Positions 1,217-63,369 of a DNA stretch of 64,000 nt are shown here, in pieces. The translations under genes and the position numbers were made by a program. Position 1 is the stretch's first letter; each line of letters opens with the position of its first letter. Under the pieces are notes generated by a model that saw nothing but the letters and a program-made list of their open reading frames with translations, made no database searches and was not told where the DNA came from. The DNA is from Hemiscyllium ocellatum. Its lineage: Eukaryota. Location of the stretch: assembly GCF_020745735.1 (NCBI RefSeq), contig NW_026867509.1:1798001-1862000 (forward strand), given 5' to 3'.

Positions 1217-1255
1217 AGTTTTAGTACAGACTCACCCAGTGTTTGTGACACTGTG
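1217..1255 (-). other. 23-bp-spacer recombination signal sequence
   Basis: CACAGTG (1255-1249), 23-nt spacer, ACTAAAACT (1225-1217). Confidence 0.92.
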
Positions 1256-1592
1256 TCCTCATTGCACAGAGGAAGGTGGCGGTGTCATTAAGTCTGGCGT
1301 CTTTAACAGTCAGAATACTGACTTTATTCACTGTACTGATTGAAGCAGTGATCCTCTCAGATGGATTATCTTCTCTTTTGGCCATCACCAGATGCTGGGG
1401 TGGATGATTCGGGAGCTGAATGTACCAACGCACTGTGCTAATTGCACTGGCAAACGAGCAATTCATGGACACAATTCCCAATTCAGTTACGACCATCCAG
1501 GTAGGAAGTTGCTTCACTTCACTTTCTCCAGTCACCTCCTTGGAGATCAGAGTAGAAAACAGCAGGACGACACCGCAAATTTGGAACATCAT
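1256..1592 (-). CDS. TCR alpha/delta-type V segment, leader and V in one exon, potentially functional
   Basis: Uninterrupted frame: MMFQICGVVLLFSTLISKEVTG (signal peptide) then ESEVKQ...VSMNC...VRWYIQLP...DTATFLCAMR. Cys23, Trp41 and Cys104 are all present and a 23-RSS follows directly. Confidence 0.9.
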
Positions 1593-1663
1593 CAGATTGC
1601 AAGATAGGTGATGAAAGTAATTAACCATGGAGCTTCCTTGAGGAACTGTAGTTAATTATTACA

Positions 1664-1669
1664 TTTATA
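1664..1669 (-). promoter_or_regulatory. TATA box candidate of the single-exon V gene
   Basis: TATAAA 36 nt upstream of the first in-frame ATG (1628). The paralog has a similarly placed TATAAATAAAA near 37140. Confidence 0.45.
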
Positions 1670-1850
1670 CAAGTATCTATCTAGAGCAATGCACGGTTCA
1701 CGTCTAACTCACGCTTAACCTGTTGGAGCTGCTGAAAAAACTGAATCTGTGTTTGTTTCTGAATCGAGCCTCTCACACTGACAGTCGTTCACATTGTCTG
1801 GAAGTACACGCCTACACCGGCCCTCATCTTCGATATTTAGCATGGATTCA

Positions 1851-5995: not shown

Positions 5996-5999
5996 TAAC

Positions 6000-6567: not shown

Positions 6568-7067
6568 NNNNNNNNNNNNNNNNNNNNNNNNNNNNNNNNN
6601 NNNNNNNNNNNNNNNNNNNNNNNNNNNNNNNNNNNNNNNNNNNNNNNNNNNNNNNNNNNNNNNNNNNNNNNNNNNNNNNNNNNNNNNNNNNNNNNNNNNN
6701 NNNNNNNNNNNNNNNNNNNNNNNNNNNNNNNNNNNNNNNNNNNNNNNNNNNNNNNNNNNNNNNNNNNNNNNNNNNNNNNNNNNNNNNNNNNNNNNNNNNN
6801 NNNNNNNNNNNNNNNNNNNNNNNNNNNNNNNNNNNNNNNNNNNNNNNNNNNNNNNNNNNNNNNNNNNNNNNNNNNNNNNNNNNNNNNNNNNNNNNNNNNN
6901 NNNNNNNNNNNNNNNNNNNNNNNNNNNNNNNNNNNNNNNNNNNNNNNNNNNNNNNNNNNNNNNNNNNNNNNNNNNNNNNNNNNNNNNNNNNNNNNNNNNN
7001 NNNNNNNNNNNNNNNNNNNNNNNNNNNNNNNNNNNNNNNNNNNNNNNNNNNNNNNNNNNNNNNNNNN
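6568..7067. other. Assembly gap (500 N)
   Basis: Run of N. Confidence 1.
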
Positions 7068-7121
7068 CAGTGAGAATGGGATACAAAATGGCAAAGACTG
7101 GGCAATCGCTGCACTGTGCAT
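7068..7121 (-). pseudogene. Orphan, frameshifted exon 1 of a GPR139-like gene (duplicate of 45336-45405), cut by the gap
   Basis: ATG CAC AGT GCA GCG ATT G-C CCA GTC TTT GCC ATT TTG TAT CCC ATT CTC ACT G has a 1-nt deletion relative to the 45.4 kb copy. Confidence 0.75.
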
Positions 7122-7589
7122 TGTCCTTTTGGAAATAATTGAATTCCTGAGGCTCTGTTGCCTTTGCTCTGTCACACTTCCAAAGCTTTCCTCATTTGCT
7201 TCTGCTGAGAGTCTCCAGAGGAACGACTAAATTAGAACGTGAACTACTCACACTTCACTGAAGAAACAGATGATGTAACAGTTACCTGATTTCTATTTGT
7301 AATATTAACGAATTAGACGAATCGAGTATTCATGTGGTTGAACAGCTGGTTCTGTACTATATGATGCCCCCATCCACGAACGAATCCTTTTTTTTTTCAA
7401 CATCGATTAGAGCGGCTGATAGCAAGCACTGAACTAAATTACAAGTCCTCCATTATTTCCTGCCTTCATGTGTTCAGAGCAGTTCATTTATCTTTGCTTC
7501 ATCCCTTTGTTTTTTTTATTGCTTTCATTTCATCGACATTTAGGGGGAGCCTTTCATCATACTGAATTAGCAATCCATTGTCGCAGACT

Positions 7590-10435
7590 AACCCTTGCCT
7601 CCTCAACATAGTATAAGTCAGGAACAGTAAAGGAGCAGTCACTTTCTTGGGAGTTTTCTATAGGCCATTCAATCGCTACAGAGACACTGAGGTGCAGATT
7701 AGGAGGCGGATTTTGGAAAGTTGTGGAAGTACCAGGCTTGTTGCCCTGGATGACTTTACCTTACCGAATGCTGATTAGTTAATTCAAATAGTTTGGGTGA
7801 AGCAGTTTTCGTTTATCAGCCGTGTTCAGAAAGGTTCCTGCCTCAGCATATAGATAGACTGACCAGCGTGGATGCCGTTTTATATCAACTTGTGCTTGGC
7901 AACGAATCATACCAGCTGACAGAGCGTTTGAGCGATAGTAATCATAACTCCCTCACCTTTCAATGTTCATGGAAATGTACGGGACGAGAAGTACGGGAAA
8001 GTATTTAGTTGGGGAAGGGGAGATTAGAATATTATTCAGCAGGAACTAGGTCGCCTAAATTGGGACAGATGTTCTCAGAGAAACGCATGACAGAAATGGA
8101 GAGATTGTTTATGGCGCAATTGCTGATAGCTGTTGATAGTTTCTCCCAAGCATGCAAGGAAGGATTGACAAGTTGGAAAAACCTTGCGTGAAAAAATGTG
8201 CAACATCTAGCCATGAAGAAGAGAAAGCTAATTTACTGTTGAGGAGGCAAGAATCAGATAGGGCTCGAGAAGGTTGTAAGGTGGTCAGGAAGGAATTGAA
8301 ACAATGAACTGTGGAGAGCTAGAAAAGGGCATGGAAAAACTTTCACAGATAGGATGAAGGAAACACAAAGGCATTTGACAATTTTCCGAGGAACACGATG
8401 ATGACCAGTGTGAGGGTAGGGCCAATCAGGGATAATGAGGGTTAGGGAACTGTGCCTGGAGTCGGAGGAGGTAGGGAAGGCACTTTATAAGTGTACTTTG
8501 CCTCAAAGTCACTGCTGGAAGGAACATTGACGTTTCTGAGGACGGCGTGAAACAAACTGATTTGAGCGAACATGTTAGTGTTAAGACAAAGAATGTGATA
8601 AGATTTTGGAATTCATGAGGATGGATAATTCCTCTGGGCCAGAAAGGATATACTTTATGTTTCTATAGGACACGAGGGAAAAGATTTCTGTATCTTTGCT
8701 GATGATCTTTGCAATCTTAGGGTACAATGGAGTAATTCTCGATGATTGGAGGGTGGCAAATATTGTTCTCTTAAAGAAATGGAATTGAGATAATCGTGAG
8801 AATTCTGGAGCAGTCAGTCACACGTCTGAGGCGGGGAAGGCATTGAGAGAAAGGATCCATCATTACATGGAAAACCCTAGTTTGAGTAAAGTTAGTCATC
8901 ATGGTCTTATGTGGGGCACGTCATGCTACACATTCTTGAGTTCTTTTAGCATGCAACAAAGCGTATTGATGAAGGTAGAGCATTGGATGTGATATACAAG
9001 TAATCGAGCAATGCGTTTGATAATGCTTCCCATGGTAGGCTCATTCAGAAAGTAAGGGAGTACAGGGAAATGTGGATACAGAATTGACTGCCTCATAGAA
9101 GACATACTTTGGTTGTATATGGAAGGCTTCGAGGCTCAATTTTGGCGACCTGTGGTGTTCTGCAGGGATCGTTTCTCGGAACTCTGCTCTACCTCATCTT
9201 TATACTTTCTTTACTCACTCATGGGCTGAGGACGTCACTGGATAACCGACATTTATTGCCCATTCCAGCGGGCAGTTAAGAGTCAACCAGGTAAGGATGG
9301 CAGGTAATATCCTTCCCAGAATGGCATTAGTGTACCAGATGGTTTTTTTTCCTAACAACCGACAAGGTATTGTTGACCATCTCAGCCTGTTAATTCCAGA
9401 TGTTTGTTGAATTCACCATGTGTTGTGGCTAGATTTGAATGTGGGTCTCAACAACATTATCTGGGTATCTGGACTAAGAGTACTGAGATGACACCACTAG
9501 GTCATTAACGCCCCTGCAATCACTTGGCCAAGGAAGTGGAAGCGTGTCCTAGTATGTTTGCAGATTACCCGAAGTTTGGTGCCGTGGTATATATGTGGAG
9601 AGCTGTTTGTAGTTTGCAACGTGACATTGACAGGATGCAGAACTGGGCTGATAATTGGCAGTGAAATTCAGACAGGAAAGGCGTGAAGTGATCCACTTTG
9701 GAAGGTCGAATTTGAATGAAAAATACAAGTTTTAAGGCTGGATCCTTGGCAGTGTAGAGGTAAAGGGGGGTGTTGAGGTCCAGGTCCGTACATTCTTCAA
9801 ATTCTCCACACAGTTTAATAGGGTTTTCGAGAACTAGTATGGTGTGTTTGGCTTTCATTAGCGGGGATTCTGTTTAAGAGCCACGAGGTTATGCTGCAGC
9901 TAATACAGCACTAGCGAGACCACACTTGGAACATTGTGTTCTGTTCTGATCGCCTCACTGTAGGAATGATGTAGAAACTTTTGAGAGGGTGCGGAGGAAA
10001 CATACCAGAATTCTGTGTGCACTGGAGGATGTGTCTTACGAAGAAACGTTGAAGGAGCTGGGACTTTTCTTATTGGAGCAATGAAGCATGAGATCTGACT
10101 TGGAATGAGGTGTACAAGATGATGAGAGGAATAGATAGAGTGGAAGGGCGTTGACCTTTCCGCAGTCGGTTCTGGCTATAACGAGCATAATTTTAAAGTG
10201 ATTGGTGGAACTTTTAGGGGACATGTCAGATGTAGGTTCTTTAAACAGAGAGTGTTGGGTGCATGGAATGCACTGTCAGCAGTGGTAGTGGTGGCAGATA
10301 CGTTAGGGGCATTTCAGCAACTCTGGGATCGGCTCATGGAAAATACGTTAGGCTGATCTTAGATAAGGATTAAAGTCAGGGACAACTCGAGGGCAGAACG
10401 GCCTCTACTGTGCTGTCCTATTCCATTTTCTATGT
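7590..10435 (+). mobile_element. Decayed CR1 LINE ORF2 and 3' tail, interrupted by a SINE
   Basis: Endonuclease and RT remnants (MRMDNSSGPE; KFADYPKFG...LQRDIDRMQNWA) ending in a gggcagaacggcctctactgtgctg...ctatgttc tail. Confidence 0.88.
9200..9520 (-). mobile_element. tRNA-derived SINE with Deu-domain-like core (SacSINE1-like), nested in CR1
   Basis: agttaagagtcaacc...ggtaaggatggcag...ccagatggttttt...ttaattccagatgtttgttgaattcacc; tRNA-like head at the right end; duplicated at about 47505-47830. Confidence 0.65.
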
Positions 10436-10557
10436 TCGATGTTCCATGTTCAATGTAATGCTTTAGAATTCAGAACTAACTATACATGTTATGGAAGGGT
10501 AGGCGAGGACCAGCATTTGCGTTTGAGACAAAATTGTCAAGAGCAATGGTTCAATGA

Positions 10558-10883
10558 TGGCACTGTTACCTCAGTGGAGGATCCGGTTCCGTTATTGATT
10601 CTAGCCTCGGGCGACTGTCTGTGTAGAGTTTTCACATTCTCCCTGAGTCTGCCTGAATTTCCTCCTGGTGCACTGATTTTCTCCCACAGTTCGAAAGAAA
10701 TGCAGGTTAGGAGAATTGGCTATGCTAAGTTGGCCAGAGCGTTCATGGATGTGTAGGTTAGGTGCATTATTCAGGGGCAAATATAGGGTAGGGGAAATGG
10801 ATCTCGATTAGTTGATCTTCAGGCTTGTGAACTTGTTGTGTTAAAAAGGCCTGTTTCCATGTGTAGGGATTCGATGATTCTAT
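10558..10883 (+). mobile_element. HE1-like SINE (V-SINE)
   Basis: tRNA-like head, V core (ggcgactgtctgtgtagagttttcacattctcc...ctcccacagttcgaaag) and a LINE-derived tail ending gggattcgatgattctatg. Confidence 0.85.
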
Positions 10884-11194
10884 GAATCAAAAATAAAAAA
10901 CATAGTTTCCTTAGCCTGTAACAAAGGAAATTTGCTATTCATATCTGATCAGGCTAGGAGAGCGACAAAGTCTCAGCAAATTCATTAACTCTGAACAGTG
11001 AAGTGGATTTCCTAACCGAGTCAAATGGTGTCAAGAGCAATAAATTGGCAAAAAAATACAAGTTCTCGTCAGATTCAGCAATATCAACATCCTGGGATTA
11101 GAGTTAACTGAAAACTGAACTGTGTTAGTTACATAAGGACGGTTCCACCACGAGCAGGGCAGAGACTATGTTTCCTGCAGTGAATGAACAGAAA

Positions 11195-11495
11195 GGACAT
11201 AAACAGGTTAAGCCACTTCGCCCACCGAGTCTACTCCACTATGCAATGCGATTCAGGATGATCTCATAATTCACAACTCAACATTTCTGCCTTTCCCCGT
11301 AACCCTAGTATTTCCTTACTGACTAATCCTCTTTTACCTTGAATATATTTAACTGCTCAACTTTTAGAGCTCACTGCAATAAAGTCACTACAGATACACG
11401 ATCCTGAAGAAAGAGAAAAAATCGTTCTTGACAATTTGCCTTAAAAGAAAACGCTTACTCTGTGATTACATGCTCTGGACCTCGACTGATTTGAG
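11195..11495 (-). mobile_element. CR1 LINE 3' tail remnant
   Basis: ccacttcgcccaccgagtctactcc...ccccgtaaccc...cttgaatatattta resembles the other minus-strand CR1 tails in this window. Confidence 0.6.
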
Positions 11496-12986
11496 GATAA
11501 TTCAGAAGAGAACAGATCATTTTCAGCTGGATATGAATTTCCCAAAGCCTCGATGGGTGAAGAATTGAGTTCTTGCCCCATACAAAGAGCAGTGATACGA
11601 GCCAATTGGATTGCGTCAGTTTTGAATCAAATATTTTGAACTTTAAATTGTGGTGTGTTAATGCGTCGGAAAACTGAGTGCAGTTCTTAATACACATGAA
11701 GTATCGGAATTGTCGCTCACGAACGTTACAATGTGCAATAAGGTTCTTATTTCGAAATTTTAACCATTGCCCCGAGAGGTTTGTCGGCAGCCTCCACACG
11801 ACCCCAGTGAATTTTCTGGTAGTTGGTCATTTCCTCGAGAATAACTTAAACAAGAGTTTCCACGTGAGATCAAATTGTGAAATCTCATGGGTAACACAAA
11901 CGTTCTGACATTTATACTTTGGAAATCAATGCCCAGCCCCCGAGAGAGGAGAACGGGCCAGACATCTCTCAGTCTGATTCACAAACAGAAAATGCTGGGA
12001 AAGCTCAGTGGGTCAAAGTAAATCTGCGTCGTGAGAAATATTGCTAATTGTGGTTGTTTTAGTTCAAATCGGTTTCAAAGGTGCTCCATGAGCTGTCAAT
12101 AGTTTTGGATTCAGTTTGTGCTGTAAAGTGATATAAAACTGCAAGGATTCTTTTTTGATCGTGTGCCCTGATGTATTATCTCTCTTCGAGGGAAAATTGC
12201 TATTTTCCATCTATGCTATTACATCCAGTAATATCGAGGATCAATCTTAAATCATGTGTTCTGTAGCACAAGCAATTTTTATTCAGAGCTACATTACCAC
12301 ATGCATGGGAGAGGCCAGAGATCAATCCTAAACTGGTTTTCCAGTGAGACCCGCTTAGAAATAGCTCAGATCCTAAGGTCTTTGACACCCTGAGTTGCCC
12401 AAAGAAATGTATGGTTTTTATAGTCTTTGCATTATTTTAATTACATGCAAAGTCGATATCATTGTTAGCCATATCCAGAAACCTCCACCATCTGTCTATG
12501 GGATCATACAAATCTTCAGAAAGTTTTCTTCCTCTTTAGACATTTACCAGCTGTATCACAATATTTATGAATAGCATAAATTTTCAGTAAGAACTCTTAC
12601 ACTTCCTGCAAAAGTTTTACAATACCAGGTTAGGAAGGATGTTATTCTTATTAGTAATTATAACTTCAGTAAAATCAACTCTAATATGAAGTTATTGTGA
12701 CACGACTGGCAAATTAAGAATCGCCTTTGTCTGATTCCAACCTCAGACTTGCAATTGTGGTTTATGATCCAATTTGTTTCGATGCTGAATGCGATTTTTA
12801 ACCTAAATGGTAATTTTAAATACTTCTTTACTATTTACACGTTAAACACTTCCGATTGCTAATTATCTTTTCTTAATAAATATATATATTCAAATTCCTC
12901 TAATAAGAGTGAAATTCTACCACTTATAACGTTATCAAGATATTAAATGAAACGTGCTGAAATTTCACAAATAACTCATGGACAAA

Positions 12987-13363
12987 TTGATATGTTGCTG
13001 CTGGACTGAAAGAAACGGGTTCAGGCTGATCTTCCCTTTCTTTGCCATCTGTCCTGAAAGAAACTGGATTTGATTTTACCTTTTGTTCCAAGGAATGTTT
13101 CTGGGGATGGTTGCAAGTAATAGGCACAGCATCATTAAGTTGTGTTCGCAGAGGTTAAGACATTCTACACATTCTGTTCTCTTTTGTTTGTGTTACATTC
13201 AGTAATCTTGTAAAAAAAAATCTGTTTTGTTTAAACCAAAGTGGTTGGGCCAGCTGCATCACTCCGGGAATGCTCTCTTCATACCTGCTTAAATCAACCA
13301 GCAAAATTAGGGGCAGGTCTATCTAATTGAAAGATTTAGTGGGGTCTGACCTGGTGCATAAAA
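12987..13363 (+). mobile_element. Solo Gypsy-type LTR, 5'-truncated in this copy
   Basis: Ends ggggtctgacctggtgcataaaa (degenerate ...cataaCA). The full-length counterpart is at 52305-52927. Confidence 0.65.
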
Positions 13364-13559
13364 CCCTGTATATCTAAATGAAGACCACAAGTCCAGCTTT
13401 GAACATTTGCTGGTTTGAACTGTTAAAACTTTTGGCCAGGTAGTGTCAGCTGAAAAAGCCCGAAGCGACTATCTTGTCAACTTATTTATGAGCTGCGAAA
13501 ACCCACCGTCCATCCTCATGACAGTTGACTTAAACACCAAGCAAACCTATAAAATATGC

Positions 13560-38570: not shown

Positions 38571-38589
38571 CGTTTATAGTTGCTAAGCC

Positions 38590-48876: not shown

Positions 48877-49205
48877 GGGCACTGCTATCTCACAGTGGAG
48901 GATCCGGTTCCATTATTGATTCTAGCCTCAGGCGACTGTCTGTGTAGAGTTTTCACATTCTCCCTGTGTCTGCCTGAATTTCTCCTGGTGCACTGATTTT
49001 CTCCCACAGTTCGAAAGATATGTAAGATAGGAGAATTGGCTATTCTAAATTGGCCAGAGCGTTCAGGGATGTGTAGGTTAGGTGCATTATTCAGGGGCAA
49101 ATATATTGTAGGGGAAATCGATCTCAATTAGTTGTTCTTCAGACTTGTGAACTTGTTGTGTTGAAAAGGCCTGTTTCCACGCTGTAGGGATTTGATGATT
49201 CTATG
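48877..49205 (+). mobile_element. HE1-like SINE (duplicate of 10558)
   Basis: Near-identical to the copy A element. Confidence 0.85.
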
Positions 49206-49825: not shown

Positions 49826-50339
49826 TAGAACATAGAACATAGAAAAATACAGCGCAGTACAGGCCCTTCGGCCCTCGATGTTGCTCCGAACGAAGCCTAC
49901 CTAACCTATACTAGCTCAATAACCTCCATATGTTTATCCAATGCCCGCTTGAATGACCATAAAGAGGGAAAGTCCACCACTGATACTGGCAGGGCATTCC
50001 ATGAACTTACAACCCGCTGAGTAAAGAATCTACCTCTAACATCTGTCCTATTCCAACCTCCCCTTAATTTAAACCTGTGTCCCCTAGTAACAGCTGACTC
50101 CATACGCAGAAAAAGGTTCTCACTGTCAACCCTATCTAAACCCTAATCATCTTGTACACCTCTATCAAATCTTCCCTGAACCTTCTTCTCTCCAATGAGA
50201 ACAGCCCCAAGTGCCTCAGACTTTCCTCATACGATCTTCCTACTATGCCAGGCAACATCCTGGTAAACCTACTCTACACCCGTTCCAGTGCCTCCACTTC
50301 CTTCCTATAGTATGGCGACCAAAACTGCAAACAATACTC
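49826..50339 (-). mobile_element. Young 5'-truncated CR1, present only in copy B
   Basis: Same subfamily as 42103-42474 (ESAVTRGHRFKLRGG); (catagaa)n tail; empty site ataattcagaagag at about 11497 in copy A. Confidence 0.9.
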
Positions 50340-52304
50340 CAGAAGAGAACAGACCATTTTCAGTTGGATATGAATTCCCCAAGCCTCGATGGGTGAAGAA
50401 TTGAGTTCTTGCCCCATGCACAGAGCAGTGATACGACCAAATTGGATTGTGTCAGTTTTGAATCAAATATTTTGAACATTACATTGTGGTGTGTTAATGC
50501 GTAGGAAAACTGAGTGCAGTTCTTAATACACATGAAGTATCTGAATTGTCGCTCACGAACATTACAGTGTGCAGTAAGGTTCTTATTTTGAAATTTTAAT
50601 CATTTCCGCGATAGGTTTGTCGGCAGCCTCCACACGATCCCAGTGAATTATCTGGTAGTTGGTCATTTCCTCGAGAACAACTTCAACAAGAGTTTCCACG
50701 TGGAATCAAATTGGGAAATCTCATGGTTAACAAAAACGTTCTGAAGTTTATACTTTGGAAATCAATGTCCAGCCCCGTCGAGACGTTAACGGGCCAGACA
50801 TCTCTCAGTCTGATTCACAAACAGAAAATGCTTGGAAAGCTCAATGGGTCAAAGTAAATCTGCGTAGTGTGAAGTATTGCTAATTGTGGTTTTTTTTTAG
50901 TTTAAATCGGTTTCAACGGTGCTCCATTACCTGTCAATAGTTTTGGATTCGGTTTGTGCTGTATAGTGCTATAAAACTGCAAGGATTCTTTTTTGATCGT
51001 GAGCCCTGATGTATTTCTCTCTTCCAGGGAAAATTGTTATTTTCCATCTATGCTATTACAGGGAGTAATATCGAGGATCAATCTTAATTCATGTTTTCTG
51101 TAGCACAAGCAACTTTAATTCAGAGCTATATTACCACATATATGGGAGAGGCCAGAGATCAATACTAAACTGGTTTTCAAGTGAGACTGGCAAAGAAATA
51201 GTTCAGATCGTAAGGTCTTTGACACCCTGAGTTGCCCAAAGAAATGTAAGGCTTTTATAGTTTTTGCATTATTTTGATTACATGCAAAGTCGAAGTCATT
51301 GTTAGCCACATCCAGAAACATCCACCATCTCTCTATGGGATCCTACAAATCTTCTCAACGTTTTTTTCCTCTTTTGACATTTGCCAGCTGTATCACAATA
51401 TTTACGAATAACATAAATTTTCAGTAAGAACTCTTACGATTCCTGCAAAAGTTTGACAATAGCAGGTTAGGAAGGATGTTATTCTTATTAGTAAATATAA
51501 CTTCTGTAAAATCAACTCTAATATGAAGTTACTATGACACGACTGACAAATTGAGAACTACCTTTGTCTGACTCCAGCCTCAGAATTTCAATTGTGATTT
51601 AGGATCCAATTTGTTTCGATACTGAATGCGAGTTTTAAACTAAATGGTGATTTTAAGTACTTCTTTACTGTTTACACTTTATACACTTCCGATTGCCAAT
51701 TTTCTTTTCTTAATAAAAATATGTATTCAAATTCCACTAATTAGAGTGAAATTCTACCACTTATAACATTATCAAGATATTAAATGAAACGTGCAGAGAT
51801 TTCACAAATTACTCGTGGTCAGCCATTTCTTCACACTATAGTTTGTAACCTGTCTTTGTCAGTTTCCCTTGATCTTTGGATGAAATAACTTGCTCGAATT
51901 AGCTCCATCTACACTTAAGTTTAATTAATTTATCTTCTCGCTTTTTATGAATCTATTCTGCCCCCTCCTGGGCGAATGGTCTTTTTGTTGCTTCGTGTTT
52001 ACGCTGTCAATGACGTTATCTTTTTCCATAATGCCTCTTTATTACTTCTGAACATTTGCTCAGGGAATGCACCTAACCTTTCAGAGAGAGTTGTTCTTTG
52101 CTTTTGCAATTTTAGAATGGGCTAAACAATTCAGAATACTGTCGTATCAAACCTTTCTGTACGTGTTTCACTAAATGACAAACTTGGGACTGCGGCCAAA
52201 CTAGGACTTCCAAGGCTTCGTGTGTTTTTGCATTTAGAAATGTTTTTAACTAAAATATGATTAACCTCCTTCATATTTGTTCCTGCGGAGAATGTCATCT
52301 TGCA

Positions 52305-52927
52305 CTTGTGACGATGTTGCTGTTTTCAGAACGTCATGCTGTGCTTGTTTTATTTTCAGAACGTTCGTAAACGCAGAGAATTTTCGAGGTCGAGGTTTGA
52401 TGGGATTTAGGGCCACTTGATTGTATCTTATGGATAGTGCCTCAGACAAAAGGATTTTAAGTTTTACAAGAAAGAACAATTGAAAATAAAGTGGAGTGGC
52501 CTGTTCTCCCAGCTCAGCTTTGATCTCGTCTGGTTTCCTTTTAGCAGGCTGTTGATATGTTGCTGCTGGCCTGAAAGTAACGGGTCCAGGCTGATCTTCC
52601 CTCTCTTTGGCATCTGTCCTGCAAGAAACCGAATTTGATTTTACCTTTTGTTCCAAGGACTGTTTCTGGGGATGGTTGCAAGTAATAGGCAGAGTATCAT
52701 TAAGTTGTGTTCGCAGAGGTTAAGATATTCTACACATTCTGTTCTCTTTGTTTGTTTTACATTCAGTAATCTTGTATAAAAAAAACTCTTATGTTTAAAA
52801 CTAATTAGTTGGGCCAGCTGCATCACACCTGGAATACCCACTTCATACCTGCTTAAATCAACCAGCAAAATTAGGGGCAGGTCTATCTAATTGAAAGATT
52901 TGGTGGGGTCTGACCTGGTGCATAAAA
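52305..52927 (+). mobile_element. Solo Gypsy-type LTR, full length
   Basis: TGTGAC...CATAAAA ends; imperfect 4-bp flanking repeat CACT/CCCT. Confidence 0.65.
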
Positions 52928-54896
52928 CCCTGTATATCTAAATGATGACCACAAGTCCAGCTTTGAACATTTGCTGGTTTGAACTGTTAAAACCTTTGGC
53001 CAGGTAGTGTCAGCTGAAAAAACCTGAAGCGACTATCTTGTCAACTTATTTATGAGCTGCGAAAACCCGCCCTCCATCCTCATGACAGTTGACTTAAACA
53101 CCAAACAAACCTATAAAATATGCAGGAGAGACACACTATCCTGCTGCCGTGGGTAATGGGTGAATCCTTCAGTTCTCTCATTTTCTCATGTTATAGATTA
53201 TTTATATGGAGTATAATTGCTTGTACTGGTATTATTAACGCAATCAATACAAAGAATTTGACAACTACTTGTGCATGAGATATGATCAGGATGCATGGGT
53301 GTATTTCGGTATTTAGTTTCCCAAACCCAAATCTGACGTATCCAGTTCGATTGTTATTACTCGCTGTCAACTGTATGAGTTGTCATCTCGTTTTTATGTT
53401 CAGACTATTATGAATGACTTCTTCGGCTCTTTTCCCAAACTTTTCCCTATCTATAATCACACGCAGCATTGATGGCACTTCCATTGCCAAGTACTTCGAC
53501 ACTTCTAAATGCATGACAGTTCGCTGGATGGTGAGATTCATCAATTCTTGTCACATCGGTTTATATAAACTCTGCATAGTATTAATAATGCTCTGCCCCG
53601 GGATGCAATTTGCAATATTCTGCCCATTTAACTTGCACTGCTTTGAACACTTCTGAGTATAGCTAGTTTATTTGAGTAAACAGCACATTGTTCTAATCAG
53701 GGGGTTCTGCAAGGATGACTGATTGTTCATTGATGAAATAGGTCACATACACTTGTCACATGTCACAAAACACAAATTGAAAGATTTTGACTGGTCATGA
53801 GTTCAGAGCTTGATCAGTGATTATTTCCTTGGTGACAATTTATTAAGCTGAAAATGTGTTGCTGGAAAAGCGAAGCAAGTCAGGCAGGATCCAAGGAGCA
53901 TGAGATTCGATGTTTCGCGCATAAGCGCGTCTTCTCTGAGATTGGGATATGGGTCGCGTAATATCCATGTGTTATTGTTCCAATACGTCCATGGATCTTG
54001 GCTAGTAGGTCAATCTTATTTTGATTGTTCCATCTGGCTCAGGCAGTGTGGACTGCGGATCTCTGATGGAATATTGTTACGTTTTCCTTCCTCTCTTTCA
54101 GGCCATCAACTACAACGAGTCACCCAGTATTGCATTTTAGACAGCCCGACGTGGGCTAGGCAATGATATGTTTTAATAACGTAGGTCATATAAAGTGTGG
54201 TGAAACCACCTTATCCATCATCTCACACACTCTGGCTTACCGTGTAATTACCCCACGCTAGTTCCCATTTATTTTTCTCTTTCTGTATGGCTGTTTCTTG
54301 AAGAGTCTTTTTTTAACTTACCTCTCTTGCTTTTCAGAAAATTGTGACTGCCAGTTTTACAAATGTCTGTTCGGTTTCTGTAAACATCTTAGCTGGCTTA
54401 TTGGCAAACTTCTTACCCTTGTTGCAGTGTTTCTACTTTCCAATGAGCTCTAATCCTAATTCCAGCAATGTTATTAAGCAATTTAGCTGCTTCTATCAAC
54501 TCTTCAACCTGTTCATCGAGCTGTCCATGAGACAAGGTGATGCACCTTCTCCAACCTCAGATCAACATATTATCATGCCCTATCCCAAACTCAGGCCTAC
54601 CATCTCATTCTCTACCATGAAAGCCGCTGGATTGACCGAACTGAGTTTACAAATCATTGACTATTTGTATATGCTCACCTGCAGGGCCATTGGCCTTACT
54701 TTTCATGATTCTAATAGAATCACATAATTATGAGGCTTCATCACTTGTCTCATCAGAGTATTGGGTTAGTACCCTAAAATTGCTCATGTATCACAATCCA
54801 GACTTGCGCACACCGGTAAAGTCTGTCTACATCACTCCTCTATGATGTGAATAATATGCTACCGACCTCATACTATCATCACTCGTTTGAATTACT

Positions 54897-54987
54897 ACTG
54901 AAAATGTGTGCAGGTTAAAGCACAGCAGGTTAGTCAGCATCCAAGGAACAGGAAATTCGACGTTTCGGGCCGGAGCCCTTCATCAGA
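54897..54987 (-). mobile_element. 91-bp Penelope-like terminal insertion, copy B only
   Basis: Absent at the homologous site near 15290; flanked by AATTACT at 54890-54896 and 54988-54994. Confidence 0.85.
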
Positions 54988-54990
54988 AAT
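54955..54990 (-). ncRNA. Minimal type I hammerhead ribozyme core (predicted)
   Basis: ATTT-CTGATGA-A-GGGC-TCCG-GCCC-GAAA-CGTC-GAAT: stem I, catalytic core, 4-bp stem II, palindromic ACGT stem III and GUC cleavage triplet. Confidence 0.7.
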
Positions 54991-56342
54991 TACTGCTGTT
55001 TAGCTTCCATTCTCATTATCACAAAAACAAATCTGAAAAAGCCTTTCAGCATTCTGACAATCCTAACTCCAGGACAAACGCTTGCTGTCACCTAGCAAAA
55101 GTTATCACCATTTAAGGTCACATTCTGCTCTTTCCCTTGACTGTTCAACATTCCCGTCCCTTACTAGGGCTTGTGAGTGATCTGTCAATTCTGAATAATT
55201 CTCCACAAAATTCCTAAAATAAATAAACAATCCTAAATTTTGCCTAACATCGTTCACAGAGTGCGTATGCTGTAATTTTTGTATTGCACTCTGCTGGGAT
55301 TATTTTTGCCTCCTTACTAAATTGATGTACCAAATACTTGTCTGTTACTTCTTGTCTTCGCAATTGTACTTTTCATGGAGTAATTTCAAGCCTGTCTGAC
55401 TTGACTGGTTACTGTACTGAATTTTTCACCACCGGTCTCTGTCTGGATGTCATCTGCATACTGAAAAATTTTTAAAAAACAGTGCCAGTCAGGTACATTT
55501 GATTAACAATATCAGCCATATATCGATCAAGTATGGCTAGACTATTGTGGAATTCCTGGCATTACCAGGTCCCTGAATTGCTTTCCTCAAACAGCAAATG
55601 CCAGCTTATTGTGGGGTTCCTTTTCCACAGGTACGAATCAGAAATTGCTCACTATATCGAGAACGGAGAATATATTCCGTTGCATTGTTAATCAATTAAA
55701 TATAGTGGCATAGTTCGCTAACATAATACAAGCTTTAGTGGTATATTAGTTTCAGGAGGTATAAACAATACTGAGGCGATGTGAACAGTCTGGCTCAATG
55801 ACCGACTAAATATATTATCTAGCATGGGATTCTGTCAGTTTAAGTGCTCCCTGCTTCTCTATACCAATCTGAATTTCTGCTTGGTTAGCCTATGTTGGGA
55901 TACTGTTGAAGCAGTGGGAGGCTTGGAGGGCGGTGAAGGAGTTGGTGAGAGGGACCTCGATCTTTGTAGGTTTGACAGGTAACAACCCATTCCTGATCAT
56001 CATCTTGATCAAATTCTCATTGAAATCTAGTGCACCGCATAACAATGAGTCTTCTGTGGCCCTGAGTGCTTTCTCTTTCAAATTTGATAGGATTGCAGAT
56101 AATATAAATTAGAAACAAAAACGCAAGTTTCTGGATAAGCTCAGTAGGTCTGGCAGCACCTGTGAAGAGAATTCAGAATTAACACTTCGGGGCAGTAGGT
56201 TCTTAAGACAGTGACGATAAGATGACAAAATTTACTTTGCAATTTGAGAGGGACAAACAGGAATCAGATGTAGCAGTATTTTAGTTGAACAAAGGCATCG
56301 ACAGAGGGAGGAGCTGACCATAACTGACTGGGAGAGAAGACA

Positions 56343-56478
56343 AGTAAAAAGTGAGATCTGCAGATGCTGGAGATCACAGCTGAAAATGTGTTGCTGGTCA
56401 AAGCACAGCAGGTCAGGCAGCATCCAAGGAACAGGAAATTTTATGTTTCGGGCCAGAGCCCTTCATCAGGAATTAGGA
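56343..56478 (-). mobile_element. Penelope-like terminal insertion with a mutated hammerhead core, copy B only
   Basis: ATTC-CTGATGA-A-GGGC-TCTG-GCCC-GAAA-CATA-AAAT; absent at about 16635 in copy A. Confidence 0.8.
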
Positions 56479-56599
56479 CATAAACAGGAAAGACAGCGGA
56501 ACAGCAATGGCAGGTTTTCTGGGAATAATTCAATCGTTCATTTCGAGAAAAACTAAGGGAAAGGGAGGACGAAGCAACCGTGACTGACAATCAAAGGAG

Positions 56600-58490
56600 A
56601 AATCATATTAAGGGAGCGAAACTCAGCGGTATCAGAGTACACTGAAAATTGAAAAAATGAGGGAGAAGATTAAATATGAGTTAGGCTAACCAGTAATATA
56701 GAAGAAATCAAGAATGTTCTTAAATATATAAAGGACAAAGGTGAGGCAAGAGTAGCTAACGTGCTGCTGTAAAATGAAGCCAGTGAAGGAGTAATGGGAA
56801 AGAAGAAATGGGGGAGAGCCTGAAGAATTACTTTACATTGGTCTTCACGGTGACAGACAGAAGGAAAATCTCAATAATCCAAGAGTGGCAAGAGGCAGAA
56901 GTGTATATGGTAGCCATATCCAAGGAAAATGTGCGAGAAAATCTGAAGATGGATAAATTACCTGGACCTGGTGGACTACGGAAGGAATTCGGATGGAGAG
57001 AGCTGAAAAGGGAATAGAGACATTAGGAATGATCTTTCAGGAATCACTAGAAAAGGGAAGGTTCCAGAGGACCCCAAAATCCCAAATGTAACTTCTGTCT
57101 TTAAGAAGGGCGTAAGGCAAGAGATGAGAAATTACAGGTTGAGTAGCCTGAAACCTTTGGCCACATTTTAGAGTCCATTATGAAGGATGGCACTTCTGAA
57201 TATTTAGAAGTGCATGGTAAAATCGGGCAAAATCAAAATGGTTTCATCAACGGCAGGTCATGCCTGAGAAATCTGTTGAATTCTTTTGAAATTATAAGGA
57301 ACAAGTTTAACCCCGAGAGAAAATTAAAGGTATCTAATTAGAATTCAAGGAGTCCTCTGAAAAGGTGCCACAAAGGAGGCTATTGAATAAGATACGAGAC
57401 CATATTCTAAATGTGGTCTGACCGAAGTCTTATAAAGCATTAGATATACGCACTGCTCTTATGTTTGCATTCTCTAGAAATAAATGTTACAGGCTTGTTA
57501 ATAGTATGTATAGAAGAGTGGCTGTCTGGCGAAAAGCAGAGACAGGGGATAAAAGAAGAATGGGAGCCAATGACAAGTGATGTTCTCCAAGTGTCAGTGT
57601 TGGGCCAACAGCTTTACACTTTACACATTAATGATTTGGGTGAAGGGACTGAAGGCAATCTAGCTAATTTTGTAAATGATACAAAGAGTGTTGTGTGAGC
57701 ATGCAGTAAGGATTTAGGCAGGTTAGAAAAATGGGCAAAGAACTGGCAGATGGCACGCACACAGAGAAGTGTGAGGTCACGCACTTTGGCTGGAAGAATA
57801 GAGGCACAGACAATTTTCGAAATGGCGTGGAAATTCCGAAAATTGAAATTCAGAGGGTCTTGGGAGACCCATTCCAGGATTCTGTTTAGGGAAACTTGCA
57901 CGTTGAGTTTGTTGTTAGGAGGGAAAATGCAATGTTGGCGTTTATTTCTAGAGAATACAAATATAAGAGCAGCGCATATACCTAAGGCTTTATAAGACTC
58001 CAGTCAGACCATACTTAGAATATTGTGAGCAGTTATGGGTGCCCTATTTCAGGAAGGAAATACTGGCCGTGCAGTGTGCCCTGGAGAATGAACCAGGAAT
58101 GTCACTTTGAACATATGAGGAACTCTGGGTCTGTATTCGAGAAATTTATAAGGATGAGTGGGGATCTAATTAAAATTTACAGAATACTGAACGGCCTGGA
58201 CAGAGAGGATGTTGGGAAGTCGATTCCATTAACAGAAGAGACGTGTACCCGAGGGTGAAGTCTTTATGTAAAGGCAAGAGTCTTCAGGACGGAGATGAGG
58301 AGAAACATCTTCAGCCAGATTTTGGTGAATATATGGAATTCGTTGCTAGAAAACTCTGTGGAGGCCAGGTTATTGAGTAATTTAAGGAAGAGTACTTTAG
58401 GTTTTTAATTATGAAGAGGATCGAAGGTTCAGGGAGAAAGTGGAGAATGTGGTTGAGAAACCTGTCAGCCATGCTTGCATAATGGAGCAC
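56600..58490 (+). mobile_element. Decayed CR1 LINE ORF2 3' half (duplicate of 16790-18700)
   Basis: Same RT motifs as copy A. Confidence 0.88.
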
Positions 58491-59536
58491 ACTGGATAAG
58501 CCATTTTCTCAACTGCACAGTTCTTTGCTCATCTGTGTTTTTTTTCACTTTAATCACTTTTTCCTTCTGCAAAATTGGACTGTTCGCAACTGAACATTCT
58601 CCACTTAAAAATCACAGATGTAGACACAAATTTGAAGTGCCATTTCTGTTGACCTCACACACACACGAGAGAAAAGAAAAGCATCAAATCCAAATTAGTT
58701 TGAAACAAAATAACAAAGATGTAAAAAAAACCTAATTCAGGGAAGGAATTGAAATGAATTTGAGTGATTATGATGCAATTGGGAACAGACTGCTGATGCT
58801 TGATTTGAATTAATTTGTTATTATCATATCTACTAAATTAATGGAAAAGTTTGGTTTTGCACGCAATGGAGGCAGATCACAACATATGACTCACATAGCG
58901 TGATTGAACAGAACGAGGAATCATTGTCACACATGCAAAGGTAAGGCAGAAAAAAAACAAGATCTACATTTGATATTGTTAATTGACTAACAGTTCCTGG
59001 ATTTTTAAAACTAATGCTGATCGCAGAGCACATAAACAGACATCAAACAGAAAATGTTCCAGATTTTCAAATACATAGTAGCCATAGTTCCAAAACCATT
59101 GAAAAATAAATGGATAAAGGAACATGCATAAATACTAATACATTAATTAATCGGTTAACCAAAAAAATGAATGAACACATATATATTTATGTAACAGGTA
59201 GATAAATTAAGTGATAGATAAATAGATACATGCATACATACATACGTAGATAGGTTATAAAGCACTGCCTGACAACACTTGGAGTCCTCAAGTTGTATTC
59301 AGAGACGCAAACTGTTAATTAATATCACATCTAAAACCTCTACAACTTCAGAAGTTGTCAATCGTTGGAATAGTAAACATCAGAGCTCAAGAATACTCCT
59401 TACAGTTAATGAGTACAAAAGCCTGCCCAGGATCCTGTCTGATTTTCGTTTGAGAGCTACCATGATGAACTGTGACTCTTTGATGAAAGAGAAAAGGCAT
59501 CGGGAAATGTCTCTATTTTGTTATCCATGGAAGGTT

Positions 59537-62021
59537 TCACCATGTAAAATTAGTGATAGTAGTGAAAGGACACATGAGCAGCTTTTTCATCTCTTCTCGA
59601 AATTTGGCCTGGGAAACCACATAAATGAAGACATTGTTGCAGGAACTAAGTATCTGTAGCATGTTCGTCGTTTTTCGAAGAATAATATCAGGGTTACTGG
59701 AATCCAAGCCGTTGAAGTAAAATTCACCTACCAATTGCATGTAAAGGTGACGCCCCACATAAGTGGACCAAAGGAGGAGGAAACTGATCGAGATGGCAAA
59801 GAGCAAGACAATGGATCTTTTGCGATTGGCCATCTCAGGGTCTGCACGGTCATCTTCACCCCAAAGTCTTTTGCGGGCTCTGCTAGCTTCTAAGATGTGT
59901 ATTACAGTTAATGTGTTCAGAAGCAGAATGAGAAAAAAAGGGAGAAGTGGTGTTAAAATATGATCCAACTTGTAGTAGACCTTCCAGAAGGACGAAGTAT
60001 AATAGATTGGTTTGATGTCACAGAACCAGGGCACCCCGTCCACAATGTACAGCGGCTGAAAGACTAAGTAGAAAGGGACATTCTTGACACAGCTCAGAGA
60101 ACAAATCGTTCCTATTACCAGAGTTGCAGTTTTCTTGGTGCAGTATTTGATCTTCAGCGTCTGACGGCTGATTGCCACAAAACGGTCAATGGTGAAAGCC
60201 ACTGTCAGCCAGACAGAGACATCACGTACAGCATAGACCATTATACTGTTGACGGTACACGCAGGGGTGGTGGACAGGATACTGTTTCTGAAGTAGATAC
60301 CACCAATACGGTTGAGCACACAGCCAGCCATAACGACAAGGAAGTCCGCTATTGTGATTGCCACGAGGTAAAATGTGATGCAGAGAGAGAGCCCACATTT
60401 TCTTTGGCACAGGACCACAATCGCCAACAAGTTTGCTATAAGAACAGTAGAGATAGATATATGACAGAATGAATCCCAATCACCAGTTAATTACCCTACC
60501 TATTTCGTGACTGAAAACCTCAGCTCACCATCTTCGTACATCCTTTTATTACATCATGAGTCCTACGATTGCAAAGTTGTTGGTTTTACTCAACATTCAG
60601 TCATGAATTAAACATTTGTACTTACGTTCTTCAGTCCAGTCGGGTCGATTGCAAATTTAGTTCTCTTTCCACTGAGTCAAATCGTTGCGAAGCTCGCCAG
60701 TTTAATCAAACACAAAATATTTTTGTCTTATCCAAATCTTTATTAATACTATCATCCATCTTTTCAAGGCAATATATTTGTTTCCTGTCTGACAATGCCG
60801 GAGTTTAATAATCACAAGCTTTGAATTTTCAGTTACATCCAGAGGTAGGATCACTCCTCATACTGCAAAAGTCTCAATTTATCTGCAATTCGACAATATC
60901 GCGTTTCATACCTATCAATCAACCTATCAGTGGTTATATGTTTACCTACAGACGTCGTAATCTCTGGAAACCTTCTTCAATGTCACCCCTCATTGTTCAT
61001 CTTTCTCTTTTTTTCATTAGGTTGTTCATTATAATCTAACATATTGTTCACAGCTGCACCAGCATGTGTACCTTATTCCTTATTGCTCTCCACATCATGG
61101 CTTGCTTGGTTATTTCAAACATCAGTTTATCATCAACCAGGTTTCTGCCTCTCTGCTGCCACATATGGACAAGAGTCGGTAAAACAGTAACGTTTGTTCT
61201 TTCAAAGTGCATGAGTGAAGATGATATTTGGTACCCACCACACTAATTATATGGTCATCATTAGATTTTTCTTTTTTTTAAATGCCACATTCCTTTACGA
61301 AATGCAAATATGGTCAAATATCTCCAAATGACAACAACAGATTCCATAACAAATTAAAATCTCTTATGAACACTCATAACTTGCATACAAATCCCGAAAC
61401 ATTTTCTGACATAATATTGATGACACTACAAATTGGAAACATATTAGTATGTAATCATTACGTCCGATCCTGCAATAAAAATTACTGTGATCATTGAATG
61501 TAGATTTAACTTGAGCTCGTCCACTACAACAATTGCGTTCTAATAATGCATTTTGATTCGTGGTTTACGAACCTAAGATAGTAATTTCTCCACAAAACAC
61601 GGAAAGCACCTCGTATGTTACCACATTGGAATTTAACTTGACTTTTAACAAATTTACAGTTTAATATTCATGCAAAAATATGTATTACAAATGGAATTTC
61701 TAGAAATTGCTTATGAAATATTAGTTAATATCATGCATTGTTGCACAATATAATTACAATTTCTATGCATATTTAGCATAAAACTTTGTAACATTTAATG
61801 CAGCTGTGCATAGTATAGGCAGGTGCTGGCTCCTAACATTCATGGAGCGCTGAAAGTTACACAATAATGTAGCCCACCACAAAAGCTAAGATAGAATGCA
61901 TTCGGTGATTTACAGACATAAATGGTAACTTATCGGTGATTGAAGGCTTACCAAGGGCACCAATCACAGCGAGAACGGGATAACAAATTTCAAAGAATGG
62001 GGCAATGACTGGCTCATGCAT
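59537..62021 (-). CDS. GPR139-like class A GPCR, intact, 2 exons (62021-61952; 60435-59537), 322 aa
   Basis: Exon 1 MHEPVIAPFFEICYPVLAVIGAL+G with GTAAGC donor; TATAG acceptor; open 7TM exon 2; 24 amino-acid differences from the 21-23.6 kb paralog by manual comparison. Confidence 0.92.
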
Positions 62022-62499
62022 CGTCTTTCAGAAGTTAAGGAAGTTCCCGAATCTGCAGTTACAGTTTCTGCGAATTTCAAATATTGCCTCATTTATTTTG
62101 AGCAAGAGTCTCCAAAGGGACGATTCGTGAGCAACAAGCACTTTATCTACATTTCAATGAACAACCTAATTAACTGAAGTTTCCATATTTTCCATTTGCA
62201 ACTTTTTGACAAACGACTGAATTGAACTCTGCCATTCCGCGTTGTCATTTACAATTAATTTGAAAGTTCCACTGATTGAATATGCTAAGTCGTGATTGTA
62301 TCGATATTGGAGAACTGTGTCTTCCCTCATTGCCATTTCTCAAATATGATGTGAATTTGCTTGCCATATTAGTTTGCATATTATTTTGACTGTGGAATGT
62401 TTTAATGTTTCATACTGTAATCGAACCAACTCCGCACCAAATTCCATAAGTTTGAATGACGGTATTTGAAAATGTTATTTATTTCTCATGGTTTCATGG

Positions 62500-63369
62500 A
62501 AGGAATGACGGTGACATTAGAACTGAATGTCAGTTTTCTCGACTCAGCTCTGAACCTTTTCTTGATTACCAATTAGACACTATTGCAGGAACTGTGTACT
62601 GGGAAGATATTCATCTTCTCTGACAGGATTTACTGCAGTCATTGAAATACAGACCACTTATGTGGAGTTCATCTGGAATATGTACGTATTGATCATTTCC
62701 AGCATAACTGGTCCACTGAATGAGGAAGCTTAGAGAGATAGCGAAGTGCAGAATAAATAATAACTTGTGGTTGGACAGCTCCGGGTCTTTGTGGTTATCA
62801 ATTCAGAACCACCTCCTTCGGGCTTGGATGACTGCAATGATATGTTTGACGATCACATCATTGTAGGACAGAATGAGGAGGAATGACAGAAATGGTGTAG
62901 AGATGTGGTCCAATTGCGGTAGCCCTGCCAGGCACGTGACTTGTGAAAACTAGACCTGATACCAGATAATCAGGCATTATATTCAGGATGTTCAAGAGTC
63001 TGGAATTGAGTTAGAAATGGACTTTCTTCATGCTGCTCAGTTGACAAACTATTCATTTGGCTAGCAGTGCAGTTTTCATCGTGCAGTATCCGGTCTTCAG
63101 TTTCTGGCAGCAAATATCCACATAACGTTCAACAGTGAAGGCCACCATCAGGCACATAGAACAATCCAGAATTACAATTCCAAGAACATTATTGACCATA
63201 TACGCGGGAATGGTGAAAAAGGAAACTTGCAGGAACGTAGATGCCTTTAATTCTGTTGATAATGGCGACAGTGATGTTGACATGGAAATCAGTTACTGCA
63301 TCACCATCAGATAGCAGTTGTTGCATTAACATCGTGCCACAGATGAGTTCGCAATCATTAACAAGTTGG
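62500..63369 (-). pseudogene. GPR139-like pseudogene, complete exon 2 (exon 1 not found in the window)
   Basis: TTTTTGTCCAAG acceptor then (A)NLLMIA; INRIKGIY; DCSMCLMVAFTVERYVDICCQKLK; multiple stops and frameshifts. Confidence 0.85.

Follow-up and report, generated by a model that had tools for sequence, protein, structure and literature searches.

The window, a 64,000-nucleotide stretch of the Hemiscyllium ocellatum genome, carries class A GPCR genes and germline antigen-receptor V segments interleaved with each other. Matches to class A GPCRs were located by tblastn at 21.2-23.7, 26.4-26.9, 42.6-45.4, 59.5-62.0 and 62.65-63.35 kb, all on the minus strand. The interleaving, proposed in an initial annotation made from the sequence, was confirmed by tblastn and Pfam in uninterrupted sequence; Ns are absent from 7068 to 64000. 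This anatomy was observed directly. Every GPCR piece and three of the four V segments are encoded on the minus strand, in line with the orientation given in that annotation. Its reading of birth-and-death in both classes also held, with intact copies adjoining dead copies among GPCR genes and V segments alike.

Receptor genes and V segments in the window

The receptor sequences were assigned as follows.

7068..7121, minus strand: dead GPCR exon-1 stub of 54 bases with a 1-base deletion causing a frameshift, cut by the assembly gap; paralogue of 45343-45405
21167..22065, minus strand: exon 2 of G1, 299 codons plus stop (ORF, Pfam)
23593..23662, minus strand: exon 1 of G1, 23 codons plus 1 base, donor G/GTAAGC
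26403..26922, minus strand: dead GPCR copy of a divergent lineage, 5' end truncated at the block boundary at 26939
42649..43526, minus strand: exon 2 of a dead GPCR gene carrying 5 or more in-frame stops and 2 frameshifts
45343..45405, minus strand: exon 1 of the dead GPCR gene at 42649..43526, exon open, promoter TATA box mutated
59537..60435, minus strand: exon 2 of G2 (ORF, Pfam)
61952..62021, minus strand: exon 1 of G2
62650..63353, minus strand: dead GPCR copy, paralogue of 26403-26922 with a longer 5' end

Two of the six copies are intact, namely G1 (21167-23662) and G2 (59537-62021), the remaining four being dead or fragments. Both are two-exon genes with GT-AG splice sites and 322-aa products, in which TM1 is encoded by exon 1. 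The exon-2 products matched Pfam PF00001 (7tm_1) with E-values of 4.6e-18 and 1.2e-18 over profile positions 4-260 of 260. Alignment to GPR15 revealed a DRF motif, the TM6 Trp and both cysteines of the TM3-ECL2 pair, and the TM7 motif reads N-V-F-I-Y in comparison to NPxxY, the proline being replaced. The receptor locus listed at 7.1 kb in the initial annotation proved to be a true GPCR exon-1 remnant but consists of only 54 frameshifted bases at the gap. Open reading frames crossing the gap were discarded as artefacts in which N had been read as X. No Pfam domains were detected in ten other ORFs of the window and no Rfam families were found in the window.

The V segments and their recombination signals are listed below.

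1217..1255, minus strand: 23-RSS of V1, heptamer CACAGTG, 23-base spacer, nonamer ACTAAAACT
1256..1592, minus strand: V1, intact TRAV-type V segment, Pfam V-set 2e-08, Cys23, Trp41 and Cys104 present
27099..27400, plus strand: V pseudogene with in-frame stops and a frameshift, Cys104 replaced by stop codons
29100..29138, minus strand: 23-RSS of V29, heptamer CACTGTG, 23-base spacer, nonamer ACAAAAACA
29141..29449, minus strand: V29, open V exon of antibody-VH type, Pfam V-set 4.6e-10
36700..37059, minus strand: V1-family pseudogene (45% aa identity) with a 1-base deletion, Cys104 lost and the heptamer decayed

In V1 the signal peptide runs directly into the V domain without a leader intron. 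Its best PDB matches were nearly all TCR alpha chains (E 1.5e-09), and a homologue search returned one protein, C. punctatum P0121, 63-65% identical. The RSS scan scored its heptamer at 7/7 and its nonamer at 7/9. V29 retains Cys104 and carries Phe at Cys23 and Leu at Trp41; a leader exon was looked for and none was identified. The best PDB matches of V29 were mostly antibody VH domains, a homologue search with it returned nothing, and its RSS scored 6/7 for the heptamer and 8/9 for the nonamer. The RSS has decayed at both V pseudogenes, the heptamer of the one at 27099..27400 reading TACAGTG; its open half matched V-set at an E of 0.066. Judged by these features, V1 alone among the four V segments looks clearly functional. 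All four V segments that had been placed at 1.3, 27.1, 29.1 and 36.7 kb were thus borne out, those at 27.1 and 36.7 kb as pseudogenes. A further probable V at 39.6 kb was dropped, finding no support in six-frame reading, in Pfam searches of every open piece or in tblastn with six V queries at E<=5.

The state of these segments bears on whether they belong to a working array. They could instead be scattered exons of a wider antigen-receptor region, rarely or never used and lying outside the working TRA/TRD array, in which case the receptor arrangement would have no bearing on T cells. Such an origin would agree with two of the four V segments being dead and a third, V29, lacking Cys23 and Trp41, with the motif and Pfam searches that found neither a J-like FGxG motif nor a constant domain in the window, and with the TCR-type V exons reported between IgH clusters in sharks (PMC12227049). 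V1 however is fully intact and has a canonical 23-RSS, and we consider scattered exons an unlikely account.

Duplication, selection and the common promoter

Self-BLAST was utilized in order to relate the receptor loci to one another. In this comparison 16.5 kb of 7068-26939 aligned to 45351-63190 at 91.1% identity, the first block holding 1.35 kb (18846-20192) and 2.1 kb (24119-26211) that the second lacks.

6568..7067, no strand: assembly gap of Ns, continuity of its flanks unsupported
7068..26939, no strand: duplicated block A, paralogue of block B by self-BLAST
45351..63190, no strand: duplicated block B, paralogue of block A by self-BLAST

A block of 20 kb or more was hence copied along with its receptor genes. 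As block A is the paralogue of block B, the window holds three ancestral receptor loci, each present twice, rather than six independent ones. The six loci counted in the initial annotation therefore exist as sequences but are not independent, being three doubled at 91% identity.

The right flank of the gap aligned to 45351 onward in the self-comparison. Its left flank (1-6567) gave no match to 43.5-45.35 kb although continuity predicts one, and continuity across 6568-7067 is for this reason unsupported. The gap also falls exactly at the edge of a duplicated block, with flanks that are not colinear with the paralogous block, as might be expected if misjoined contigs or uncollapsed haplotypes had produced the interleaving or the duplication. 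Such an artefact is exceedingly improbable, given that no gap interrupts the sequence across the GPCR-V junctions at 26.4-29.5 and 36.7-43.5 kb, that 9% divergence and kilobase-sized indels far exceed allelic expectation, and that independent assemblies of two other species place V segments beside receptor genes.

Identity between G1 and G2 is 95.1% in the coding sequence and 92.3% in the intron. Their comparison gave a dN of 0.039 and a dS of 0.090, that is a dN/dS of 0.43 (Fisher p 0.005). These substitution rates show directly that purifying selection acts on G1 and G2. C. punctatum P0001 differs at 12 of 296 residues from G1 and at 28 of 296 from G2; by this comparison G1 appears conserved, nearly all amino-acid changes having apparently fallen in G2.

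A promoter block lies ahead of the first exons at these positions.

7194-7220 (approximate), minus strand: promoter block of the 7068..7121 stub, TATA box mutated
23732-23758, minus strand: promoter block of G1, CTTTGGAGA...ATAAAT
62091-62117, minus strand: promoter block of G2

The block is found at -97, and the TATA at -76, from the ATG. It was observed directly ahead of G1 and G2, ahead of three zebra-shark genes from the chromosome that bears V segments, and ahead of a control gene from a different chromosome; inside the window the pattern is confined to exon-1 sites. The receptor genes are self-contained, each keeping the conserved core promoter specific to the family; the same promoter also stands before a zebra-shark member of the family on a non-TCR chromosome. 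An O/E (EBF) site was considered as the first promoter element and rejected, a good consensus match being present only in G1 and G2 and the match being poor in other copies.

The receptor family and its neighbourhood in other species

Searching PDB sequences with the receptor returned GPR15 (2.8e-5), GPR139 (3.1e-4) and the PrRP receptor (4.7e-4), all weak and of similar strength. The label "GPR139-like" given initially is therefore a weak one, human GPR139 matching at 3e-4 and no better than GPR15. Membership of the GPR139/GPR142 subfamily is not supported, GPR139 not being clearly the closest characterised receptor and matching more weakly than GPR15. Human GPR139 and GPR142 (PDB 7vug) are also class A GPCRs and their name has come to the shark family by automatic annotation, but the shark family is not their orthologue and numbers hundreds or more.

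At E<=0.001 a total of 776 homologous proteins were found, and the matches listed were shark and ray annotations. Within Hemiscyllium ocellatum the nearest relatives are scattered over at least 10 contigs. The family tree contains orthologue pairs across orectolobiform families as well as local pseudogenes. By these sequences the family is a large, lineage-specific birth-and-death group of class A GPCRs, as expected of a chemosensory receptor repertoire, and has been greatly expanded in cartilaginous fish. Sharks and rays have few classical odorant receptors. Literature searches on GPR139 in shark or cartilaginous fish and on orphan GPCRs in elasmobranch olfactory tissue returned nothing relevant, and no paper was found on this family, which is very large in sharks and rays.

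A like neighbourhood was seen directly in two other sharks. On zebra-shark CM060551.1, two of the three related receptor loci have a same-strand 23-RSS V within 10 kb, and no V lies within 10 kb of the control receptor locus on CM060515.1. A V remnant is located 4 kb upstream of a related whale-shark locus, and no V was seen at the one skate receptor locus examined; the comparison thus covers few loci, four of the five being from one order, Orectolobiformes. Intergenic DNA of the window did not align to that of the zebra-shark or whale-shark loci beyond short interspersed repeats. Intact receptor genes share their strand with most V segments, in the window and in zebra shark. Co-duplication predicts this sharing, and shared regulation would fit it too.

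Receptors could be coupled in function to the array. Lying in its chromatin domain, they would be opened in developing T cells, and V-to-J deletion would leave clones with specific receptor complements. Intact, selected receptor genes between same-strand V segments, a neighbourhood that has been kept in both zebra and whale sharks, and V(D)J mechanics that entail deletion of the intervening DNA are all consistent with this. Against it, a relative of the receptors located on a non-TCR chromosome carries the same promoter, and the family is large with members on many contigs. Four of the six copies are dead, giving no sign that the locus preserves its receptors, and the window sequence offers nothing in favour of thymocyte co-opening or clone-specific complements. 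We regard functional coupling as very unlikely.

Probable passengers of a V array and known parallels

The receptors are probably long-resident passengers of a duplicating shark TCR alpha/delta-type V array, without a job shared with it. The passenger reading, one of two offered in the initial annotation, is the one favoured by the block duplication, the family-wide promoter and the closest relatives on many contigs. The window is probably part of such an array, long home to a cluster of the receptor family; there, a single duplication spanning 20 kb or more doubled three receptor loci and gave rise to G1 and G2. The array's proneness to duplication would explain why receptor genes keep multiplying and dying in this place. 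We infer that the window lies within a working TRA/TRD locus, that receptor genes are deleted on joining and that they have no T-cell role. By standard V(D)J mechanics, V-to-J joining would remove the receptor genes between the chosen V and J if J and C are on the low-coordinate side. This loss would probably be without consequence as the genes are most likely expressed outside T cells.

A bolder proposal would trace the presence of the receptors in the TCR alpha/delta V array to the common ancestor of bamboo, zebra and whale sharks or earlier and have them co-duplicate with V segments, with V(D)J recombination producing clone-specific GPCR content if they are transcribed in lymphocytes. We judge this most improbable. 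If there were such transcription, antigen-receptor rearrangement would be linked to a second receptor system; the immunological weight of the locus is probably small unless lymphocyte expression is found. In a milder version, clusters of chemoreceptor-type GPCRs would recur by TCR alpha V arrays in sharks and mammals, the same stochastic-choice chromatin benefiting both. The window offers a practical handle on the shark and ray receptor family, with two intact genes and a duplicate pair evolving lopsidedly, and the conserved promoter block could serve to trace in which tissue, and through which factors, the family is turned on.

No paper was found that describes receptor genes of this family within a shark TCR V array. 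V29 resembles the Ig-type V segments of shark TCR delta arrays (TAILV; touched on in PMC12227049) in being VH-like, in having a 23-RSS and in lying among TCR-type V segments. It differs from them in lacking Cys23 and Trp41. The closest parallel to the receptors themselves is the 5' end of mammalian TRA/TRD, where olfactory receptor genes lie among TRAV1/TRAV2 (human OR10G2 and OR4E2; mouse Olfr1507-1509), a synteny that is conserved across species and for which there is no known T-cell link (PMC4574546). The likeness, drawn already in the initial annotation, is apt (PMC4574546). Both are class A GPCRs of a large birth-and-death family positioned between TCR alpha V segments. In contrast to the mammalian olfactory receptors, the shark family is specific to cartilaginous fish and nearer to peptide-receptor-like GPCRs, and its genes have two exons and were copied by recent block duplication. 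The mammalian TCR beta locus contains trypsinogen genes (human TRB locus). These are likewise an unrelated multigene family embedded in and duplicated with a TCR locus, whereas the shark case involves another locus, another gene family and another lineage. The nesting of foreign multigene families in TCR V arrays thus extends beyond mammals, with a different GPCR family in sharks.

Receptor genes and the duplicated blocks

ORF listing and tblastn of the window, with its two long GPCR ORFs as queries, placed GPCR-like sequence at five places, every one on the minus strand, as the initial annotation had claimed for all receptor loci. Each long ORF (Pfam 7tm_1, E about 1e-18 for both) was found to be exon 2 of a two-exon gene, G1 or G2.

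GPCR-like sequence in the window (slash, splice junction)
21167-22060, minus: tblastn match, exon 2 of G1
23593-23662, minus: exon 1 of G1, ending G/GTAAGC
26403-26922, minus: tblastn match, dead copy
42649-43526, minus: tblastn match, dead copy
59537-60430, minus: tblastn match, exon 2 of G2
61952-62021, minus: exon 1 of G2, ending G/GTAAGC
62650-63353, minus: tblastn match, dead copy

Exon 1 comprises 70 bases, codes for the start and most of TM1 and joins the acceptor TTATAG/CA in both genes, and the spliced frames each read 322 codons, which agrees with the 322-aa receptors proposed earlier. The dead copy at 42649-43526 is interrupted by two frameshifts and by in-frame stops, of which there are at least five; its exon 1 (45343-45405) is still open. 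The tree described below assigns the two other broken copies, 26403-26922 and 62650-63353, to a very divergent lineage. Intact G1, G2 and the V segment V1 thus stand beside dead GPCR copies and two V pseudogenes, as had been noticed. An ESM Atlas entry corresponds to the G1 exon-2 ORF from its fourth residue read as Met (21170-22051, minus); some pipeline thus predicted a truncated single-exon protein lacking TM1. The database matches listed included no full-length model of G1 or G2.

By self-BLAST, 7068-26939 (block A) and 45351-63190 (block B) are 91.1% identical over 16.5 kb of alignment, which several indels of 0.5-2.1 kb interrupt. The six receptor loci counted earlier therefore do hold receptor-like sequence but amount to three ancestral loci, each present twice. 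Of the six, the one at 7.1 kb could not be upheld as a locus: it comprises 54 exon-1 bases, has a 1-base deletion and breaks off at the sole N run of the window (6568-7067). Sequence from 7068 on is paralogous to that from 45351 on, and the dead GPCR gene has its intron and exon 2 at 43.5-45.35 kb. Were the gap a small break in otherwise unbroken sequence, 5-6.5 kb should match 43.5-45.35 kb; no such match was found, so continuity across 6568-7067 is not supported. ORFs spanning the gap were rejected as artefacts. Given this break on one side and V segments beside receptors in other shark assemblies (below) on the other, we regard an assembly artefact as a very improbable account of the arrangement.

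The duplicated blocks contain no V segment; V1 precedes block A and the others lie within the 18 kb that separate the blocks. The end of block A, at 26939, falls inside a dead receptor copy, with an inverted V pseudogene about 160 bases away, a position that suggests a rearrangement breakpoint. An older duplication was also observed by self-BLAST, with 65% DNA identity between V1 and the 36.7-kb V and 68% between G1 and the dead 42.6-kb copy.

V segments

V segments were confirmed at four of the five positions initially annotated (1.3, 27.1, 29.1 and 36.7 kb), but at 39.6 kb none was detected by six-frame reading, Pfam or tblastn.

V segments of the window
1256-1592, minus: V1, intact, Pfam V-set
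27.1 kb, plus: pseudogene with stops, a frameshift and heptamer TACAGTG
29141-29449, minus: V29, open V exon with a good 23-RSS
36.7 kb, minus: pseudogene with a 1-base deletion, Cys104 lost and a decayed heptamer

Nearly all of the best PDB matches to V1 are TCR alpha chains, and a canonical 23-RSS (recombination signal with a 23-bp spacer) follows it. A split leader is normal for V genes; in V1 the leader intron is absent and the signal peptide continues into the V domain. The same continuity was seen across the V1-type TRAV family, namely in V1 (1256-1628, minus), the dead 36.7-kb copy (36757-37059, minus), the C. punctatum protein P0121 and a zebra-shark V (L001:19542-19877, plus). Antibody VH domains dominate the best PDB matches of V29, in which Cys104 is kept but Phe replaces Cys23 and Leu replaces Trp41. 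No clean leader exon was found for V29, and upstream of it an in-frame stop separates the sole ATG from a hydrophobic leader-like stretch. An ORF at 182-260 (minus) ends in the framework-1-like stretch G-Q-S-A-V-L-T-C-Y-K-Y and may, although without Pfam support, be what is left of a further V segment close to the window start.

The window holds no J-like motif and no Rfam family, and ten further ORFs yielded no other Pfam domain. That the V segments are little-used scattered exons is considered unlikely, with the missing J and the irregular V29 set beside an intact V1 and its canonical signal. V1, V29 and the 36.7-kb V are all oriented toward low coordinates. Should the J and C genes lie on that side, standard V(D)J mechanics predict that joining of V29 would excise G1 and V1 and leave G2, while joining of V1 would leave every receptor gene of the window in place.

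Relatives, promoter and neighbourhood of the receptors

A public protein search returned 776 relatives at E<=0.001; the matches listed belong to shark and ray annotations, with "probable GPR139" as the automatic name of most, and identity to a C. punctatum protein was 96%. In a search of solved structures human GPR139 scored just 3.1e-4, behind GPR15, so the GPR139-like identity first proposed is a label and not orthology. By features and structure the look-alikes are peptide-receptor-type class A GPCRs. Ahead of TM1 the N-terminus has only a few residues. Most motifs are of the canonical kind (DRF, the TM6 Trp and the cysteine pair); the proline is missing from the TM7 motif.

A tree that set 90 relatives beside G1, G2 and the dead copies united G1, G2 and the C. 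punctatum protein P0001 in one starred clade and grouped the dead 42.6-kb copy with intact C. punctatum and H. ocellatum genes. Many whale-shark, zebra-shark and bamboo-shark genes paired one to one. These pairs and the dead-copy groupings indicate old sub-lineages with birth-and-death turnover.

G1 and G2 share 95.1% identity in coding sequence and 92.3% in the intron, with dN 0.039, dS 0.090 and a ratio of 0.43, replacement changes being below expectation (Fisher p 0.005). Over 296 aligned residues, P0001, the closest database protein, shows 12 differences to G1 and 28 to G2. It sides with G1 at most sites where the two differ, which places nearly all of the amino-acid change on G2. Evolution after duplication was thus lopsided between 59537-62021 (G2) and 21167-23662 (G1) with P0001 as reference. 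Judged by these substitutions, G1 looks firmly constrained, and G2 would be either relaxed or changing function.

Alignment of the 240 bases preceding each start codon revealed two conserved elements at fixed spacing, C-Y-Y-T-GGAGA at about -97 and ATAAAT at about -76 from the ATG.

Promoter block of the receptor family
23732-23758, minus: G1
62091-62117, minus: G2
7194-7220, minus: dead copy
About 45480-45500, minus: dead copy
About 9900-9930 of L001-L004: zebra-shark receptor loci

G1 and G2 have both elements, as do the zebra-shark genes, among them the CM060515.1 control gene that has no V within 10 kb, and the spacing of the elements is constant in bamboo-type and zebra sharks. In the whale-shark gene ATAAAT is retained at -76 and the first element is a variant; in the two dead copies of the window the TATA element is mutated to GCAAAC or GCAAAT. 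On both strands of the whole window the combined pattern occurs solely at exon-1 sites. As the control gene shares it, receptors in the V array carry the ordinary family promoter and may be regulated independently of the V array.

Neighbourhoods were scored by a V within 10 kb of a related receptor locus.

Receptor loci in other species
L001, zebra shark, CM060551.1 (1.67-1.85 Mb): V1-family TRAV with 23-RSS, same strand, 5.5 kb downstream
L002, zebra shark, CM060551.1: no V within 10 kb
L003, zebra shark, CM060551.1: V with 23-RSS, same strand, 5 kb upstream
L004, zebra shark, CM060515.1 (control): no V within 10 kb
L005, whale shark, NC_063373.1: V remnant 4 kb upstream
L006, thorny skate: no V within 10 kb; two receptor genes and a zinc-finger gene

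The V segments beside receptors in zebra and whale shark indicate that the mixture is common to orectolobiform sharks at least. In two cases the receptor 3' end is followed, about 5.5 kb downstream and on the same strand, by a V1-family V: a dead pair in the window (37059-42560) and an intact pair in zebra shark (L001:14051-19542). The intervening DNA of the two pairs does not align, and they could represent an old V-plus-receptor duplication unit or a coincidence. Short interspersed repeats at 56352-56472, 10597-10883 and 48918-49204 recur in the zebra- and whale-shark loci in several copies, in both orientations and at 70-77% identity, and are probably SINE-like elements common to orectolobiform sharks.

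Probable passengers and known cases

With the family promoter shared by a gene away from any V, real coupling of the receptors to T-cell biology appears quite improbable. It is probable instead that the receptors are neighbours copied with the V array and share no task with it. They would be autonomous genes living by chance in an often-duplicating region, their copies made with the region and kept when useful (G1) or otherwise lost (the four dead copies).

A literature search found no paper on this receptor family in sharks or on such genes in a shark TCR locus, in line with the initial annotation, to which no described array of this type inside a TCR locus was known; a map of the shark antigen-receptor region (PMC12227049) does not mention GPCRs. 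That paper gives epaulette-shark coordinates in its Table S1 and has a nurse-shark set of 20 tissues (PRJNA1179899), with thymus, spleen, blood cells, olfactory epithelium and brain regions among them. The receptor family itself is the more promising subject. The nearest known case comes from mammals (PMC4574546): in human, mouse and sheep, olfactory receptor genes stand between TRAV1 and TRAV2. The shark receptors differ from these in family, in lying apparently inside the array and in having been co-duplicated recently.
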